A stretch of 64,000 nucleotides of DNA from Lytechinus pictus (lineage: Eukaryota). The stretch spans positions 19,592,001 to 19,656,000 of the forward strand of contig NC_087260.1 in NCBI RefSeq assembly GCF_037042905.1. The letters are read 5' to 3'. Below the pieces are notes generated by a model. That model saw only the letters and a program-made list of their open reading frames with translations. It was not told where the DNA came from and searched no databases. Shown here in pieces: positions 37,463-45,700 of this stretch; within the stretch, counting starts at the first letter, position 1; each line of letters opens with the position of its first letter. Made by a program: the position numbers and the translations under genes.

Positions 37463-38929
37463 TACTGCCCTGTAGCCAGGATATCCGAACATTTTCGAAT
37501 TTGAATTGAAACAACTCAGATGCTTTTGAGTGTTACATTTTCAGCTGGGCGATATCAACACCATTGCCATTTCATTTAGAACTATCCAGGCACGAGGAAC
37601 GATTTTGGAGCTATTCTGGGGAGGTGTGTGCCGTCCGTCTAAAATCTATCACCTCTGGTGCGCTTCCTGCCACTCTATTTCAGAAAGTGTTCCATTTTGC
37701 GTCATGTGTTTAGCGATGATTACGTAATAAATTTTGGTATGAACCTCTCGATGGGGATTGTGAGGATCTCCTGACACCATTACATGCATCGCGCCTCTAA
37801 TTCGACACACATGCCTGGCCTGGGAGACAGTCCATTTATTTTCTCACACGCATATGCAGGAGAACCACCATTGGCCCGGCGATCCTTGAAGCGGTTTTCG
37901 ACATTAACTGGTGATCTAATAGGACATAAACACCCTCGTCATCCCGGTATTGCTCTGACCGACAGGACCTGTCATCACGTAGAGCGATGTCAGATTCGAT
38001 ACACGGAATATAATTTTTCGCGATGAATATTTGAATTCAACTGAGGACCGAGTTTTTCCCTTCATGAAACATGGTTTTGGGTTAAACATGAATCTAAGTA
38101 GGATCATGTGATCAAATAAAGAGGAGGTGACTATGCAAAGTGGTGTTACTTTAGTGATAAAAAAAACAAATGTGCAAGATTGATGTGGGTTCTCATGTAA
38201 TGTGCATTCCTGTAACTACTTTGGTTTTTACAAGGAGCTATATAGAACATCATCCCTGGTTTCCCGCACCGTCTAGAAGTCAACCGTGCAAGAGTTCAAA
38301 TTTTGGCCTTTTCCTGACAGAAATTGGATGACAAAAGTTGTGTCACCTTGCCATTATTATTCATAAGCGAGACGTCTAATCATATTGAATTAAGATCGCG
38401 GGGCCTCTTTAGGTCCCGGTGGAGCTTGCACTTGGCGTTGGGAGTCATTCTGTGTGTTCAAGACATTGATGTCTGCGTAGGGGTTGAATTGAGATGACCT
38501 GGATCACCAACCGAGCCCGGAAATATACACAACGTGAGTTGGTGAGGTTTGGGCATTCACGGAGATCGTAAAGACATTTATAGTTGCACACTAGGAGTGT
38601 ATTTTCAAACACGGTACACAGTTGTACCTCACAGGCCCCATGAATATGAACTCTACTTGGAATTAACATGGTGAATGTGTTTTTTTTTCTATGGATGTTG
38701 ACAATTGATTTTTTGCGGAGGAAAACAAGTGATAATTCTCAATAAAGGGTTTGCGATCTGTTGTGAGGAGCCAGCAGGTAACATGTCTGTGATGTTTTTA
38801 GAAGTCTAGTGGAAACGGTGATAAGGGACGCCTAGTGTGAACTGGGGGTTAAGGTCTTGGTCTGAGTAAGAGGATCATAAAAGGGGTGGAGGCGAGCAGA
38901 TCTGGGGGATAGTAGCCCAAGGGAAAAAG

Positions 38930-40747
38930 ATGGCAGGACGGGACCTCGTAAACACTGAAGGTAAGATTGACATTGAGTTGTCGCAGGAAAGGAGCGACAC
39001 TGCTGATAATGATCAGCTGGGAGTTCCACCCCAAACGGAGGCCAGGAAAGAGAGAGATCTGACACAGAATTTCGATCACATTTATTCTCATGTTGCCACC
39101 GACCATGAACGCAGGCGGAGCAAAGACAGCGACCAGTACAACACGCTGTTCGACTCGCAGATCGAACTGCCCGACTTGAATGACTTGATCGACAGCCCGC
39201 TAGTGCCTGAAGTCCCCAGAGACTTCACCTTGACAAGAAGTTCGTCTGGTATTGTGTTCGGGGGCGATGGGAATACGGTTCAAATCGAAGAAGATTCGAT
39301 TCATAGTTTTGACACAGAAGGCGATTCTCGCTCTTTATTGCTTAACGACACTCTCACTGAGGTTTCAGAAATGTATGCTAGCGCCACCACTTGTCCTGGC
39401 TCGGACAATGAAATCTATGCATCGCCCGATGACGAACACATAGAACCCGTATATGAGGAGATTCCTTTCTTGAGAAATCGCAACCGCGATCAACCAATTG
39501 CTCGATGTTCGGCAGCATCGAATGAGGGTTCACCTCAAGGGGAGGACAATCCAGTCGACTGCCATCTAACGACGAAACCGAGAGAGCCTGCACCGATTCC
39601 TGACACATCCGCACCCCCTGATACTGGGAGAGTTCCTGAGTGTGACGTCATCTATCAGAAAGTAAGTACTTCAAGCAGCCGAAGCACTTCAAGCTCAGTT
39701 GAGTCGAAACCACGGGATGACACAATGGCATTTTTCAAGCGCTCTTTCGCTAAGGTTCGACTAGACTTACTCTTTAGGAAAAAGAAGAACACAAAATTTG
39801 TGGAATGCGTTGAGAAAGTTATCGAGGCCCGACGTAGTGGATGCATTGATGAGGAAGGGAATTTTGTGCAAGCTTTGGATGAACAATTAGCGAAACATGC
39901 CAAAGAGACGGCGAAGGATAAGAAATCCAAGGAGAGTGGTGGTGATGGCGGTGAGAAACGATCGGAGGATGAAGTGAAGCCTCCAGAGCTGGGGGTTTCG
40001 AACCCCAACTACCGGGAATCATATCCCTTGCCCGAGGAAGACGATGGGTCGGAAGGGTACGCTTCAGCTAGTGAGATCGAGACAGTAGATTCTTCGAACA
40101 GTAGTAATTCTGGCCCAGAGAGAAGCCCGAGACTTTCTGGAATTCTCAGCAACAGGAGTTCGCATCATGAATCTTCCGAAGACAGCGGCGATGTCGATGG
40201 TGACGGGAAAGGGAAACGTGTATCCCGTCGTACCTCCTCTCGCCGCGTCCGATTCTCCGACGAAGTCCAGGAATTCGAACACATCCATCTCTTGGGTAAA
40301 GAGGACAGAAGTTTCGTGTTGTCGTCATCGGACGACGAAAGCGTGAATGATGACGATGTTTGCGTTCTAAGCTTGACCAGCAAGATTTCTCTTTTTGAGA
40401 ACATGAGCAAAATGAAGGACCCTTCAAAACTTCATCCAAAGCTGACCAGGACATCAGGGCATCGTCACAGTGACCCAGGTCCAACCAGAGACTCCATGAT
40501 CCCCGATTCTAGCGAATTTACAGACAGCAATGACGGAAAATGTAATAAGTTAGGTTCCATCACGAAAGCCAGGGTACAGGTCTTCGAGAAACTGTCAAAC
40601 ATGAAGCATGGAGAGGTGGTACCAAAGCCGAAACCCAGAACGAGTTTGCTTGAGATCAGAATGAACCAGACAAAACAGAAAATTATGTTTTTTGAGCAAC
40701 TGAAAAGCGGACAAAATTTGCTCCTTCATGAGGAGGACGGGGAATAA
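38930..40747 (+). CDS. Uncharacterised 605-aa single-coding-exon protein, predicted disordered, rich in short linear motifs
   Basis: 1818-nt ORF that is GC-richer than its flanks. Strong Kozak context (AAGATGG), in-frame upstream stop at 38867, and three AATAAA signals at or just after the stop. S/D/E-rich composition; no folded domain recognised. Confidence 0.85.
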   Translation: MAGRDLVNTEGKIDIELSQERSDTADNDQLGVPPQTEARKERDLTQNFDHIYSHVATDHERRRSKDSDQYNTLFDSQIELPDLNDLIDSPLVPEVPRDFTLTRSSSGIVFGGDGNTVQIEEDSIHSFDTEGDSRSLLLNDTLTEVSEMYASATTCPGSDNEIYASPDDEHIEPVYEEIPFLRNRNRDQPIARCSAASNEGSPQGEDNPVDCHLTTKPREPAPIPDTSAPPDTGRVPECDVIYQKVSTSSSRSTSSSVESKPRDDTMAFFKRSFAKVRLDLLFRKKKNTKFVECVEKVIEARRSGCIDEEGNFVQALDEQLAKHAKETAKDKKSKESGGDGGEKRSEDEVKPPELGVSNPNYRESYPLPEEDDGSEGYASASEIETVDSSNSSNSGPERSPRLSGILSNRSSHHESSEDSGDVDGDGKGKRVSRRTSSRRVRFSDEVQEFEHIHLLGKEDRSFVLSSSDDESVNDDDVCVLSLTSKISLFENMSKMKDPSKLHPKLTRTSGHRHSDPGPTRDSMIPDSSEFTDSNDGKCNKLGSITKARVQVFEKLSNMKHGEVVPKPKPRTSLLEIRMNQTKQKIMFFEQLKSGQNLLLHEEDGE

Positions 40748-40796
40748 AGCACAAACCTCAGAAAATAAAGCAAAAATCTTATTTGTCAAGAATAAA
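40743..40796 (+). terminator. Clustered polyadenylation signals
   Basis: AATAAA at 40743 (overlapping the stop), 40764 and 40791. Confidence 0.55.
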
Positions 40797-41796
40797 CTTA
40801 GGATCCCAATTCAAACTTGTAGAGTCTTTTCAAAATACTATGTATATTTCCTATACCTCAAGACATTTTTAAAATTTGTTATACATGAACATGGAACATA
40901 TTTCTGTTCTCATTCTATGTCACGGTGTTTGATGTACAAACGGCAATAATGATTAGAATGGTATGAATTCACGTGTGCACCTTCTAACGAATTTGAGTTT
41001 GCCAAGGCATGATTTGCTTCTGTCAGCTTCATAATATACTGTGCCAATTTCCACCAATTATCAGCCTTAGCTGTAGGCAGGAAACCCACACCACTGTTCT
41101 AACCCATTCTCCTGTCAACGAACACCCCTTCCGACGTATTAAATGGGATCATAACAAGGAAGGGATGCACACTTCGGGCAGACAATTAGTCGGAAAACAA
41201 ATGTCTTCCTCTCGGTGAGCTGTGATGCTTCGACACTAATACTGAAGCCAGTGGTCACCCACTTCAGGTAGCAATCGGTAAATGAACCTATGCGGATTAC
41301 TTTGAAGGTTCTTCCGATTAGCTCCAGTAGCAGGTGTGCAGAGAGACAGGGGGAACTGGTAGCGGAGCACCATTATGATGTCAGGTTGATCACCTTTCCT
41401 GAGCAGATCGCACACAAATCTCTGGTACCTGGAATTAAGAAAGACAACCTGGTTGGGCGGATATGAATAATCAACCCATCATGTTGGGTAATGGTAGGGG
41501 GTTGACCGACCTGGGAATCCTATTGTCGATGCTAAATTTAGAAGAAATCAGAAGCACGTGCATTTGTGGATTAGAATTTGAAGCTCGATGAGCTGCTCGG
41601 ACGGCTTCCGTGTAATGGAGAGGGTCTTTAAAAGCAGGTGTTGCTATAATTGCTGTCTTCCCTACCAGATAATTCGTCACTGGTGTCATTCTGGTATACA
41701 TGTACGCCCCTTACAATATGCAATGTCCCTTACGTATTTGATGATATCTTGTCCAAGGAGTGTTGCTTGATTATTGTCTGTCGCATGCAATTTCGA

Positions 41797-41989
41797 TCAC
41801 TGTATTGTTGACGCGGATCTGCCTAAACTGACGCAACAATAAAATGACCGCATGCACTAATCAAGTATCTTGAGGTTATGAATCGTCGTTCAACAAATCT
41901 GATGTTTGATACTTGATCAATTAAGCTTTGGCGCAGTTGCTCATGCAGTGTTGCGTCAAAATGCAGTTCTGCGTCAATAATGTAGTGAC
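41797..41989. mobile_element. Old palindromic MITE
   Basis: TCACTGTATTGTTGACGCGGATCTGC...TGACGCAACA / TGTTGCGTCA...GCAGTTCTGCGTCAATAATGTAGTGA. Confidence 0.65.
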
Positions 41990-42073
41990 GCATCGTATAC
42001 ACTAGGCATTAGACTGGGTGATGAATGGAGAGGGGAAAACCAGTGAATAGGTAACCACTCCTCCCAATCCACA

Positions 42074-42187
42074 AAGCTACAGCCACACCAACGAAACCGA
42101 CTCTAGACCGACCAAATCTATTACGTTGTTTTCAATGACATGTCATCGGTCGGGTTGGGCCGATTCTGTTGGTGCGGCAATAACTTT
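42074..42187. mobile_element. ~115-bp palindromic MITE family; related copies at ~44016-44140 (inverted) and ~45045-45148
   Basis: Shared AAGCTRCAG.CACACCA...GAAAC.GACTC...ACCGA ends and a TTACGTT...CAATGACAT core. Confidence 0.65.
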
Positions 42188-42539
42188 AGAGCAGACTAAG
42201 GGCAGATGCATCCTCTATTATGATTCATGTTTAATTATCATGTTAATCATGGAATTTCCAGTCGGACACATTAATCAAAAAGGGAATTAAGAAAGGATGT
42301 AGATGTTCATTTATCTCTTTCCTTTGTCTACCAAGATTAAGATTTAGTTGATTACGAAAAGTCATTATCGATTGCCTTGTGTGTGTGTACATGTTTTAGA
42401 TCTTTTATAATCGTTTGCACTTTGTGTAATGGGGCTAATGCCTTTGAGATGACAATGACAAGTATGATCTAGATGGTTCGCACTTTGGAATCAAATACCG
42501 AGATCCTTCTGGGGAAGCAATATGAAACATTTGATATAT

Positions 42540-42770
42540 TAATCGCTACAGGGTATCCATTTGTCTCGCAATCTACTATGGTCAACAAGGAAATTCGTGA
42601 TCACTCTCGCTAAAAGTGTTCACTAGCTTTCTAGGAAATTCGTGATCACTCTCGCAAAAAGTGTTCACTAGCTTACAAGTTCACGAGCTTTCGAGTGCCG
42701 CTGCAACTCTTTATCATTTCCTTGTTGACCATAGTAGATTGCGAGACAAATGAATACCCTCTAGCGATTA
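42540..42770. mobile_element. MITE/foldback with ~55-bp near-perfect TIRs and an internal direct duplication
   Basis: TAATCGCTACAGGGTATCCATTTGTCTCGCAATCTACTATGGTCAACAAGGAAAT and its reverse complement at 42716-42770 (2 mismatches). Confidence 0.88.
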
Positions 42771-45700
42771 TTTCAGTCCGCAATAATGAACCTATTTAGT
42801 ATTTGATATATTTTCAAGACGTTTCGATATCAATCTATAATTACTTAATATGTGAATATCAACTTTACCATGGTTACAGTTAAGCATCTAAAATGTAATT
42901 CCACATTCAAAACACTTGTCTTTATACCTCTCATGTGCAATCATAATGCCTTTCATTTTTTTCTTCAAATTTATAGCTTATCATATGGGGGGTGACGTTT
43001 TGGCGAAACAGCCATCAGATAGAAGTGGTGCAGATCAATTTGATCTTTAAACCATGCAATATCTCTGATAACAGTGTATTTACTGGAGACAATGTGCAAT
43101 ACAAAGATATATATTCGTGTTCAATAATTACATCTGAATTCATTCGTGCAATTATATATGTTGACGGCAAGAAAGTAGTCAAGTTTTCTGTTCGTCCCGA
43201 GGTCGGGACCGAATCAGGTAGCAGTAGCACAATTCCTGAAATATTTGAAAGAGAATTTCCAAATGAGTCATCATGCAGAAGACAATGTGCAATAGTAAAA
43301 TTCATGAAATGTATTGAATGTTCAAGGACGTCTTTCAAATTCACAAGTGCAATATTGATATCTGGGTATGAATCATCATAAAATACTTTCATCATTTCAC
43401 TGCTAACACGCTAAATGTATTAAGTTCATTCTTGAGTGATATAAAAATGGGAGTATGTTGATTAAGCATTGCCATCTGAAAACCTTAACATGAACCCTTG
43501 TTCAGGGCATTCATGATAATAAAAATGTGATGACCAATTCTGATTTCTTTTCGATCGTTAGAATGCAGTGAAGCATAAAGCTGCTTCCAAAGACTTGTCC
43601 TTTTTATAAATGAATGTCCTTAGTTTAGTGACATCACTGACGCCAAAAACTCGTGACTTTGCTACTTACTGTACTCATACTTCGACAGAAGGAATGATTG
43701 AAAGTTATTGAAGATGATTCATTCTCAAATCTAAAGTAATGATCAAAAAGAAAATGTTACCACAAAAGATTTGACCACCAGGCACCGTGGGACCACGGTG
43801 AGACACAGCATGTCCTTTAATCCAATTTACCAATATCTTAGTCACCGGGACAACCTCATTGTCCAAGAGGACGGCTCAATGTCACGAAATTATCTTCTTT
43901 AATATGACACAGAGTGAATGAAATAGTATTGTTCATATTTTAGACATATTTTGACTACTTTCCGCGATGATGACGAATTCATCGAGATAATAAATCATTT
44001 CTCTTGTCAATTTATAAGCTGCAGTCACACCACCGCGTTACGATGAAACTGACTCCAAACCGATCGATGAAATGTCATTGGAAATAACGTAAAGGGTTTG
44101 GTCGGTCTGGAGACGGTTCCGCAGGTGTGACGATAGCATAGAGGTTCACCCACACGGTCAATGCTCCTAAGAAGTTGAGTCACTCCGACATTCGCATGAC
44201 CTCATCGACATGACGAACATAATCCCATAATGTATTTTCGTGAAAGGAGATGTCAACGCAATATCGTCTGGCATGTGATGAAATGTGATTGTTTTTCTTT
44301 TTGGCAAAATAAGATTTCTACTTCTTCAATATTGTTTTCGAACCCCTGAGTCATTCTGATAACCACATTTTCATCCGCGAGAAAAATTACTCGCATTTTT
44401 TCGATACCAGTAATCGAATTAGAAATTAACAATAATATTTCAGATGTTTATGAATTGAAATTAAATTCTATGTTTTTTCAATGTATACGTATGTCATATA
44501 GACATGTGTGTTGTAAATGCTGCTACTGAAAATAGGTACAGGATGTCTTTTTTAAAAGGATTAAATTTCATTTATCTATATTTTGGTTTTATCAGGGCTT
44601 ATGTGATGTGCCTTCCCGAATACTCGTATGGCTCATCTTGGCCACCAGATATAAAACCCTTATGACTCTGTGTTGATGAATGGTGTTTTTTAATGGTGGG
44701 CTTTTTAGAATCTGTAGTCTTTAAATATATTTGAAAACACTTTCAGATCGATCGCAACTCTTACACTAATCCTAACAAATGGACTTCAGAGACAAGAGTT
44801 GAGATCAACCCCACAGATATTAAAACGGGTTCTTGGGGTTGGTCATGTCTGCACCCTCATAAATGAGGTCTGTGATGGCAGTTGTGAAACGGACCAGAAA
44901 TCATCTTACATCAATAATAGTGTTTCTGTGTGCTATACCCTAGAATAATGGGCTGTCAAATGCCATATCAGCCCCTTGACACCGTATAGTTGCGTCAGAC
45001 ACAATACATGGCGCATTGGGTCCGATTTTATGCCTCATGCAGTTATAGCAAGGAAACGAACTCCACACCGACTAAAGCTATTTCGTTATTACTAATGGGA
45101 AACCATCGGTCGCTTTTTGAGTCGGTTTCATTGGAGTAACTGTAGCACTACAAGGACTTTCAGTCCACTAAGTTTGCAATGGGCATAAAAGATATACGAA
45201 CATTGCCTAAACATAATTATGTACTCATGAACCATGATGATTCATTGGTATCGTTAACAGAAGATACACCTGCAGTAGGTTTAATGAGGCGATGATAATC
45301 ACCTAAGTCGTCTTGATTGCTCATTACGAAAATGATAGCGGCATCTGATGCCATCCGATGCCGCCATCTTCCGGGAGACGAAGCGCGTGCTATTGTAGTA
45401 TTTCACACTCTACGCAATGTGATAGATGACAAGTGAGACTAATTAGTCAAGACCTGGAGATGGGGTCAGGAAACGGTTCACATAAAGGAGAATGAAGGCA
45501 TTCGACCCAGGCATCATTGCAAATCGGAACTATTTACTTGTACTTCTAACCAAGAAGCGAGGGCAAGTAGGGGTGATGCATTCATTAATCACTTAAACGC
45601 TGCCTTTGTCATCACTCGTGTGGCATAACTCTGCTTCCTTGTCTCTGCGCTGTGAGAAAATATGATAAATGGAATCAATTTATGATGGGCGTTTGGCGAA

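Follow-up and report, generated by a model that had tools for sequence, protein, structure and literature searches.

A candidate PP1-actin scaffold, conserved and intrinsically disordered, encoded by an intronless gene of Lytechinus pictus

The 64-kb stretch of Lytechinus pictus DNA analysed here (contig NC_087260.1, positions 19,592,001 to 19,656,000 of the forward strand; below, the window) contains an open reading frame (ORF) of 605 amino acids at 38930-40747, which is almost certainly a real coding gene, one that is functional, lacks introns and specifies an intrinsically disordered protein. We tentatively propose that this protein is a scaffold that would hold protein phosphatase 1 (PP1) on actin filaments, with a function like that of neurabin and no homology to it. 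The proposal rests on sequence, from which we infer all binding events and the cellular location. The protein probably belongs to a new family within a known class, the disordered RVxF-type PP1 targeting subunits with actin-binding short motifs.

As we picture it, the protein would work through a core of short elements. An N-terminal amphipathic helix, a polybasic run and a small helical module may provide membrane or partner anchoring, and an acidic motif containing Ser and Tyr may be used for docking to some partner. A canonical RVxF site would dock the PP1 catalytic subunit, and three induced-fit helices of the Lifeact/ITPKA type would bind the side of actin filaments. The whole core would thereby form a PP1-to-actin-filament tether without PDZ, coiled-coil or SAM domains. 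An earlier note on this DNA had pictured an adaptor that targets PP1 to cortical actin. The link from PP1 to actin is retained here as a proposal, with an RVxF site that is invariant in predicted disorder and three conserved, predicted-helical Phe-Glu (FE) repeats, whereas for a cortical target we found no evidence beyond the N-terminal amphipathic, polybasic helix.

A conserved intronless gene and its family

The gene and its paralogue have the following positions (those of the gene count from the first letter of the window).

38930-40747, plus strand: complete coding sequence including the stop codon; ATG start, 605 amino acids, no intron in the coding sequence
G000:C16:21343473-21344756 (L002:934-2217): paralogue of the family core, a single ORF of 427 amino acids, 1.7 Mb downstream on the same contig

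The ORF is by far the longest of the window; the runner-up (227 amino acids) is simple sequence that is open in several frames. The nearest upstream in-frame stop is a TAA at 38867-38869, 61 nucleotides 5' of the ATG, and the ORF closes with a stop codon. Its G+C content is 0.44-0.46, against roughly 0.26-0.40 over the rest of the window. The description of the product as acidic and serine-rich in the earlier note was accurate: Ser makes up 12.9%, Asp 9.6% and Glu 9.6% (19% for the two acidic residues), the net charge is -36 and there is no Trp. Contigs of two species are collinear with 38183-41987 without joints, which bears out the single exon and leaves room for an untranslated upstream exon. 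The motifs that had been listed are likewise all in place, namely the Tyr cluster, the segment MAFFKRSFAKVRLDLLFRKKKNTK (starting at Met266, nucleotide 39725), NPNY, RRVRFS and the FE repeats. Only the description of the latter as three IxxFE repeats needs amending: all three are present, but the second has V instead of I (VQVFE).

Selection on the ORF, which the earlier note had put forward as a check, proved to be purifying. The ratio of non-synonymous to synonymous substitution (dN/dS) was calculated by the Nei-Gojobori method for the window ORF and its orthologue P0001 on a 5.4-kb contig of another species (L004). The alignment with this contig spans the ORF and parts of its flanks, and the P0001 protein is 85-88% identical to the window protein. 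The dN/dS is 0.087 at a dS of 0.78. Residues 1-265 and residues 266-605 give 0.09 and 0.084, respectively, and since the ratio is low in each half, both are translated and constrained. Furthermore, in contigs of run X4, from a third organism that is about 3.5% diverged, the sole indel inside the ORF is an in-frame +GAC, and indels of 1-2 nucleotides begin 124 nucleotides past the stop codon.

Two runs, the RNA nature of both of which is guessed, cover the ORF and an apparent long 3' untranslated region (UTR) without joints, and their depth falls to zero over the flank 37300-38087, as transcripts would give. Expression of the gene is probable, and it is not ubiquitous. The 811-Mb genome holds two related loci, the window gene and one paralogue. 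With two genomic copies only, the window gene is not a transposon, and a transposon or retroelement ORF was rejected on this count and because neither a transposase, reverse transcriptase or integrase domain nor any other Pfam domain was found.

A first protein search with the window protein returned seven relatives. A profile of the C-terminal part found 10 proteins among 1.84 billion representative proteins, and a broader profile run against 5.8 billion sequences added one, giving a family of about 12 clusters. Database records exist for two of its members, a Holothuria leucospilota (sea cucumber) protein annotated as hypothetical and an unnamed UniParc entry. Only the Holothuria record names its organism; that the closest clusters come from urchins is something we infer. 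As seen so far, and on the basis of these two records and the absence of other matches, the family appears to be restricted to echinoderms, in agreement with the suggestion that the protein is lineage-specific.

Four members (P0004, P0008, P0009 and P0010) are about 300-400 amino acids long and start exactly at the equivalent of Met266, with MAFFKRS. Because these short members begin there, the C-terminal 340 or so residues, from Met266 to the end, are judged to be the ancestral protein. Wherever genomic context was returned, in orthologues and paralogues alike, the ORF is complete and single. The paralogue in this genome carries a Gln-rich and basic insert and, together with the rest of the family, a FNPTAFLERNRR motif that is missing from the window gene's own orthologue group.

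Conservation was scored per block as mean pairwise column identity, with one sequence per lineage.

Acidic motif: 0.92
RVxF block: 0.80
FE repeat 3: 0.73
N-module: 0.67
FE repeat 2: 0.56
FE repeat 1: 0.55
Linkers and tail: 0.05-0.30

The motif blocks thus score 0.55-0.92 against 0.05-0.30 for linkers and tail. The expectation that conservation would peak on the motifs holds for the RVxF site and the FE repeats, but not for NPNY. The latter cannot be regarded as a family motif, as it is kept only in two urchin paralogue groups and absent from the other members.

Candidate PP1 and actin motifs in the core

The core and its elements, all on the plus strand, are as follows.

39725-39868: core start, with Met266, amphipathic helix, polybasic run and KVIEARRSGCIDxxGN module (N-module); identity 0.67; the short members start here
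40001-40012: NPNY, residues 358-361; NPxY in two urchin paralogue groups only
40013-40075: acidic motif RxSYPLPEEDDGSEGYASASE, residues 362-382; top family block, identity 0.92
40241-40267: RVxF-type PP1-docking motif RRVRFSDEV (putative), residues 438-446; strict pattern, conserved, disordered
40373-40408: FE repeat 1, LTSKISLFENMS, residues 482-493; predicted helix 482-493; ISLFE at 486-490
40463-40483: RHSDPGP, residues 512-518; conserved in two urchin paralogue groups only
40562-40597: FE repeat 2, TKARVQVFEKLS, residues 545-556; predicted helix 540-556; VQVFE at 549-553
40670-40705: FE repeat 3, TKQKIMFFEQLK, residues 581-592; predicted helix 573-595; IMFFE at 585-589

The sequence RRVRF matches the strict RVxF pattern [HKR][ACHKMNQRSTV]V[CHKNQRST][FW], with one match where shuffled sequences give 0.04 (P=0.04), and [RK][RK]VRFSD[DE]V is present in every family member that covers the region. 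The site has a predicted local distance difference test score (pLDDT) below 50, basic residues upstream, and a Ser and acidic residues downstream. It is invariant even in lineages whose linkers have diverged beyond recognition. An invariant RVxF in disorder, amid diverged linkers, is what a functional PP1-docking site usually looks like, and we consider that RRVRF probably docks PP1. A SILK motif was considered and rejected, the string SGILS having no K/R and being confined to the window's own orthologue group. In this genome PP1c is encoded in small exons separated by introns. Of two intronless metallophosphatase ORFs in the genome, one resembles a purple acid phosphatase and the other an ApaH-type enzyme; neither is PP1.

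The FE repeats have the family form xxK(I/V)xΦFExΦS. In repeat 1, K, I, L, F and E are invariant in alignments A1/A2, the family variants being YFE in P0008 and FFN in P0009; F-E and S are invariant in repeat 2, and T, K, I, FFE and L in repeat 3. The repeats resemble a short linear actin-filament motif, VxxLxxxFE, with key positions P1, P4, P8 and P9, of which 124 instances have been described in 103 human proteins; neurabin-1 has three such motifs and neurabin-2 two (PMC13364712, 2026, Table 3). In the window protein the corresponding 9-mers are LTSKISLFE, TKARVQVFE and TKQKIMFFE. All three have Phe at P8 and Glu at P9, which are invariant across the family in repeats 2 and 3, and repeat 1 has Leu at P1, hydrophobic as in the consensus.

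A relaxed form of the actin motif matched four times in the window protein against 0.55 expected in shuffled sequences (P=0.002). The fourth match, FSDEVQEFE, was discounted, as it overlaps the RVxF site and is not conserved in the family. Repeat 1 also agrees with Lifeact at the Ile of P5, the hydrophobic P11 and the Ser of P12. Among the variants listed for the human motif, some have K/R at P4 together with I/V at P5, as in IKQKISQWE (DENND2C), VNQKVGMFE (ITPKB) and IRQRISSFE (IL16), and others T at P1, as in TSNIRANFE (cortactin) and TRGLKAKFE (HCLS1) (PMC13364712). The affinities reported for single motifs are 2-12 µM (PMC13364712), and because single sites are this weak the three copies would be expected to act jointly, by avidity. 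Binding of the FE helices to actin filaments is, on these motif comparisons, a tentative possibility.

Actin, too, is encoded in this genome by genes with introns; among the exons checked, the largest has an open frame of 191 amino acids. An actin-family gene of at least three exons lies at G000:C16:19555533-19557841 (minus strand), about 34 kb before the start of the window.

Most of the protein is predicted to be unfolded, with local helices. In an AlphaFold2 model of the core built with the family alignment the mean pLDDT is 55; for the N-terminal arm, modelled on a shallow alignment, it is 43. Helices in the core model occur only at 266-281, 289-302 and 316-331, which are the N-module and the residues just after it, and at 482-493, 540-556 and 573-595, exactly on the three FE repeats, the last being the best predicted (pLDDT 83-87). 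The earlier note had called the protein domain-less, and the searches agree: Pfam gave no family for the window protein at E≤1, and a profile search of PDB sequences gave nothing at E≤10. For the seven relatives, Pfam at E≤0.1 returned only sub-threshold, unrelated hits to DUF4685 (E=0.03) and TFIIA (E=0.007). A literature search for the motifs of the protein as strings found no match.

A few further candidates were set aside. A feature search of the ESM Atlas (maximum 0.81) returned arthropod clusters and weak hits to the actin-associated families CRACD DUF4592, LIMCH1 DUF4757 and Shroom ASD1, all below noise, and was left unused. FFAT, 14-3-3 mode 1 (Arg at -2, not -3) and beta-TrCP degron readings were rejected by eye, and an LC8 TQT anchor before repeat 3 was rejected as TQT is found in two members only.

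Known regulators and rival readings

Neurabin and spinophilin hold PP1 on actin filaments. The window protein resembles neurabin-1/spinophilin (PPP1R9A/B) in having an RVxF-type site and several Lifeact/ITPKA-type motifs in a disordered region, and in its predicted job. There is, however, no sequence homology between the two, and the window family is without PDZ, coiled-coil or SAM. The order of the elements is reversed as well, with the RVxF site first and the actin motifs at the C-terminus, and the neurabins have neither the N-terminal amphipathic, polybasic module nor the invariant acidic motif. Compared with Lifeact/ITPKA-type motifs in general, the FE repeats are similar in that each is predicted as an isolated helix within disorder. 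They too have the invariant Phe-Glu at P8-P9, hydrophobic residues at -3 and +3 relative to the Phe, and a Ser at P12 as in Lifeact. Their departures at P4/P5 or P1 are matched by the ITPKB, DENND2C, IL16, cortactin and HCLS1 variants. In contrast, the window copies lack the canonical Leu at P4, and they are conserved between two echinoderm classes, whereas the motifs traced so far are mostly vertebrate-restricted (PMC13364712).

Other PP1 regulators resemble the window protein in part. Phostensin/taperin (PPP1R18, TPRN) and Phactr1-4 are also disordered PP1 regulators that bind actin, but they have another PP1-binding arrangement, and Pfam searches for Phostensin, Phostensin_N and RPEL gave no match in the window protein (E≤1) or the seven relatives (E≤0.1). 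According to a review, PPP1R15 carries an amphipathic, membrane-binding helix at its N-terminus; its KVRF lies at 555-558, and Phe and Ile residues further downstream contact G-actin; an Arg/Trp pair about 15-25 residues after the RVxF is needed for its actin-dependent activity, and there is a RARA motif. PPP1R15A/B (GADD34, CReP) and the window family share the amphipathic N-terminus, the predominant disorder and a [KR]VRFS[DE]xV site followed by helices, for which actin contact has been shown in PPP1R15. They differ in that the window family has no PF10488 match, no Arg/Trp pair and no RARA motif, and in that the actin cofactor of PPP1R15 is G-actin, bound via another helix. The earlier note did not recognise the protein as neurabin/spinophilin or phostensin; this stands, with no PDZ, SAM or phostensin Pfam match, and it extends to Phactr and PPP1R15.

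Several observations weigh against the proposed PP1-actin tether. RVxF-like strings arise by chance in about 4% of shuffles. All three FE repeats have K/R at P4, where the canonical residue is Leu, with I/V at P5, and repeats 2 and 3 have Thr at P1 instead of Val, Leu or Ile. The proteins traced in the motif study were without motif-positive orthologues outside vertebrates (PMC13364712). The N-module and the acidic motif, called the two most conserved blocks, are left unexplained by PP1 and actin. In two RNA-seq runs with the same species label, of which some 6% each (about 8.7 and 8.3 million records) was sampled, no reads fell on the ORF, and it is only a guess that the runs behind the contigs over the ORF are RNA.

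The same departures from the actin motif, a non-hydrophobic P4 and the Thr at P1 in two repeats, lend themselves to the main rival, in which the protein is a conserved disordered scaffold whose FE helices, acidic motif and N-module bind partners other than actin and whose RVxF site may or may not recruit PP1. This reading would also accommodate the top blocks (acidic motif 0.92, N-module 0.67) that have no partner in the PP1/actin model; short amphipathic helices are promiscuous, and no known family was matched in any search. We nevertheless think it rather unlikely, as the motif is present threefold, nearly all members retain its F-E and the model gives an isolated helix for every copy. The likeness to listed actin-motif variants is close, and neurabin provides a precedent for PP1 docking combined with actin motifs. 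A very unlikely reading is that of a highly diverged PPP1R15 (GADD34/CReP), a subunit of the eIF2-alpha phosphatase. Its layout runs parallel, with amphipathic N-terminus, KVRF and, further on, helices that contact actin, and [KR]VRFS[DE]xV is also the local string of GADD34. The PPP1R15 Pfam model moreover finds nothing elsewhere in the genome at E≤0.1, a weak negative that cannot show absence, and a literature search for sea-urchin GADD34 gave nothing useful. On the other side, PF10488 was missed at E≤1 in the window protein and at E≤0.1 in the seven relatives, no PPP1R15 chain was found in the PDB at E≤10, no R/W is conserved after RVRF in the alignment, the window protein is Trp-free and lacks RARA, and its first helix lies at a different distance from RVxF.

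Two more rivals concern the gene itself. It is extremely improbable that the ORF represents a single large exon and that further exons, encoding for instance PDZ or SAM domains, complete a multi-domain gene. The contig data would be compatible with an upstream exon, untranslated or coding, and conserved blocks extend up to 2.1 kb upstream. This is countered by the in-frame stop 61 nucleotides before the ATG, the terminal stop codon, the complete and single ORFs of orthologues and paralogue, the lack of a coding signature in the upstream conserved block and the absence of joints over 38183-41987. That the ORF is non-functional, be it a chance ORF, a pseudogene or derived from a transposon, might be argued from the zero reads in the two raw RNA runs and the lack of a known domain. 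This is effectively refuted by selection and conservation: the dN/dS of 0.087 at dS 0.78, motif blocks kept across echinoderm classes and only two copies in the genome, together with transcript-like coverage in two runs that is zero on the flank and positive on the ORF.

PP1 specificity comes from a few hundred mostly disordered partners, many of them lineage-specific and unrecognised. If the proposed PP1-actin scaffold is real, it would be an echinoderm-only family of PP1 partners defined purely by short motifs. Its design, with one RVxF and several Lifeact-type motifs, would be independent of that of neurabin and probably convergent. It would have direct bearing on a recent proposal, according to which such actin motifs originate de novo and are for the most part a late acquisition of vertebrates. 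Nothing comparable is known for the N-module or the acidic motif, each of which may represent a new type of docking motif. Cortical actin and signalling by Src-family kinases are classically studied in the eggs and embryos of sea urchins, so the protein should be easy to test there by tagging, knock-down and peptide binding.

The N-terminal arm and the flanking sequence

The part upstream of Met266 has the following features, all on the plus strand.

38930-39724: N-terminal extension, residues 1-265; predicted disordered; in P0001/P0002 only
39119-39367: best conserved block of the extension, residues 64-146; nearly invariant in orthologues at 63% overall identity
39410-39469: tyrosine motifs EIYASP (Y163, YxxP type) and VYEEIPF (Y175, YEEI type); Y163, P166 and YEEIPF invariant
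39647-39664: tyrosine motif VIYQKV (Y242); VIYQ.V invariant in orthologues

The N-terminal half searched alone gave no other homologue, and the extension is unrelated to the different N-terminal extension of P0005-P0007. It holds six tyrosines: Y52, Y70, Y149, Y163, Y175 and Y242. Five of the six, with their contexts (HIYS.V, D.YN.LFDSQ, Y..P, YEEIPF and VIYQ.V), are invariant among orthologues, and residues 64-146 are better conserved than these tyrosine motifs. YEEI is the classic ligand of Src-family SH2 domains, and (I/V)YxxP is of the Abl-substrate and Crk/Nck-SH2 type. Once phosphorylated, the YEEI and YxxP motifs of this urchin-type arm could recruit SH2 proteins. The idea of a tyrosine kinase-regulated adaptor fits insofar as the tyrosine motifs are present and conserved in orthologues, but they are absent from the short members starting with MAFFKRS. 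As only the two closest orthologue clusters have the arm, control by tyrosine kinases would be a later, clade-specific addition.

A change in coverage coincides with the boundary between arm and core. Contig depth in run X1 rises from at most 5 over 38876-39663 to about 50 over 39721-43200, and one X1 contig ends exactly at 39721, four nucleotides before the Met266 codon; this position is polymorphic (C>T in X4). The ATG of Met266 has a good context, with A at -3 and G at +4. The step is not put down to a splice acceptor, as position 39721 has no AG. It may mark an internal transcription start for the ancestral short protein, or be an assembly artefact. A short product from Met266 is hinted at by this roughly tenfold step together with the family members that start there.

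More speculatively, the locus might give both this short form and a long form whose arm is phosphorylated by Src/Abl-type kinases, a membrane-anchored PP1-actin scaffold switched by tyrosine kinases, as at fertilisation. Its triple actin-filament motif would be independent of neurabin, the first outside vertebrates and shared by two echinoderm classes. This full scenario is decidedly unlikely.

Within the arm, a strong splice-donor consensus, AAA/GTAAGT, lies at 39656-39669 (codons 243-246), and the spliced form is absent from the contigs. A copy of ORF nucleotides 527-569, which encode EIPFLRNRNRDQPI just after YEEI, is found at 34640-34682, 4.8 kb upstream on the same strand (43 nucleotides, 97.7% identical), with an AG before it and a GT about 35 nucleotides after it. 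The 43-nucleotide sequence occurs in two copies only in the 811-Mb genome, and the upstream copy may have arisen by a stray micro-duplication or be the relic of a tiny exon.

Two conserved blocks flank the gene.

36806-37577, no strand assigned: upstream single-copy conserved non-coding block, candidate regulatory region or 5' UTR; 80% identity with the other urchin
41025-41667, no strand assigned: downstream single-copy conserved block, probable 3' UTR; 76% identity with L004

Each is present in one genome copy. The upstream block has no codon periodicity, frameshifting gaps and no ORF of more than 72 amino acids; the downstream block is covered by the same contigs as the ORF. Both are conserved although synonymous sites are near saturation (dS 0.78), and they are candidate cis-regulatory or UTR elements.

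Further downstream, at 42540-42770, lies a dispersed repeat resembling a miniature inverted-repeat transposable element, with terminal inverted repeats of 55 nucleotides that are 96% complementary and 121 nucleotides apart. A first look gave 785 candidates for it in the genome, and it accounts for the only pile-up of RNA reads near the gene and for the joints there between opposite strands. A tRNA-Glu (CTC) gene is found elsewhere in the window, at 18892-18963 on the plus strand (Rfam score 59 bits).

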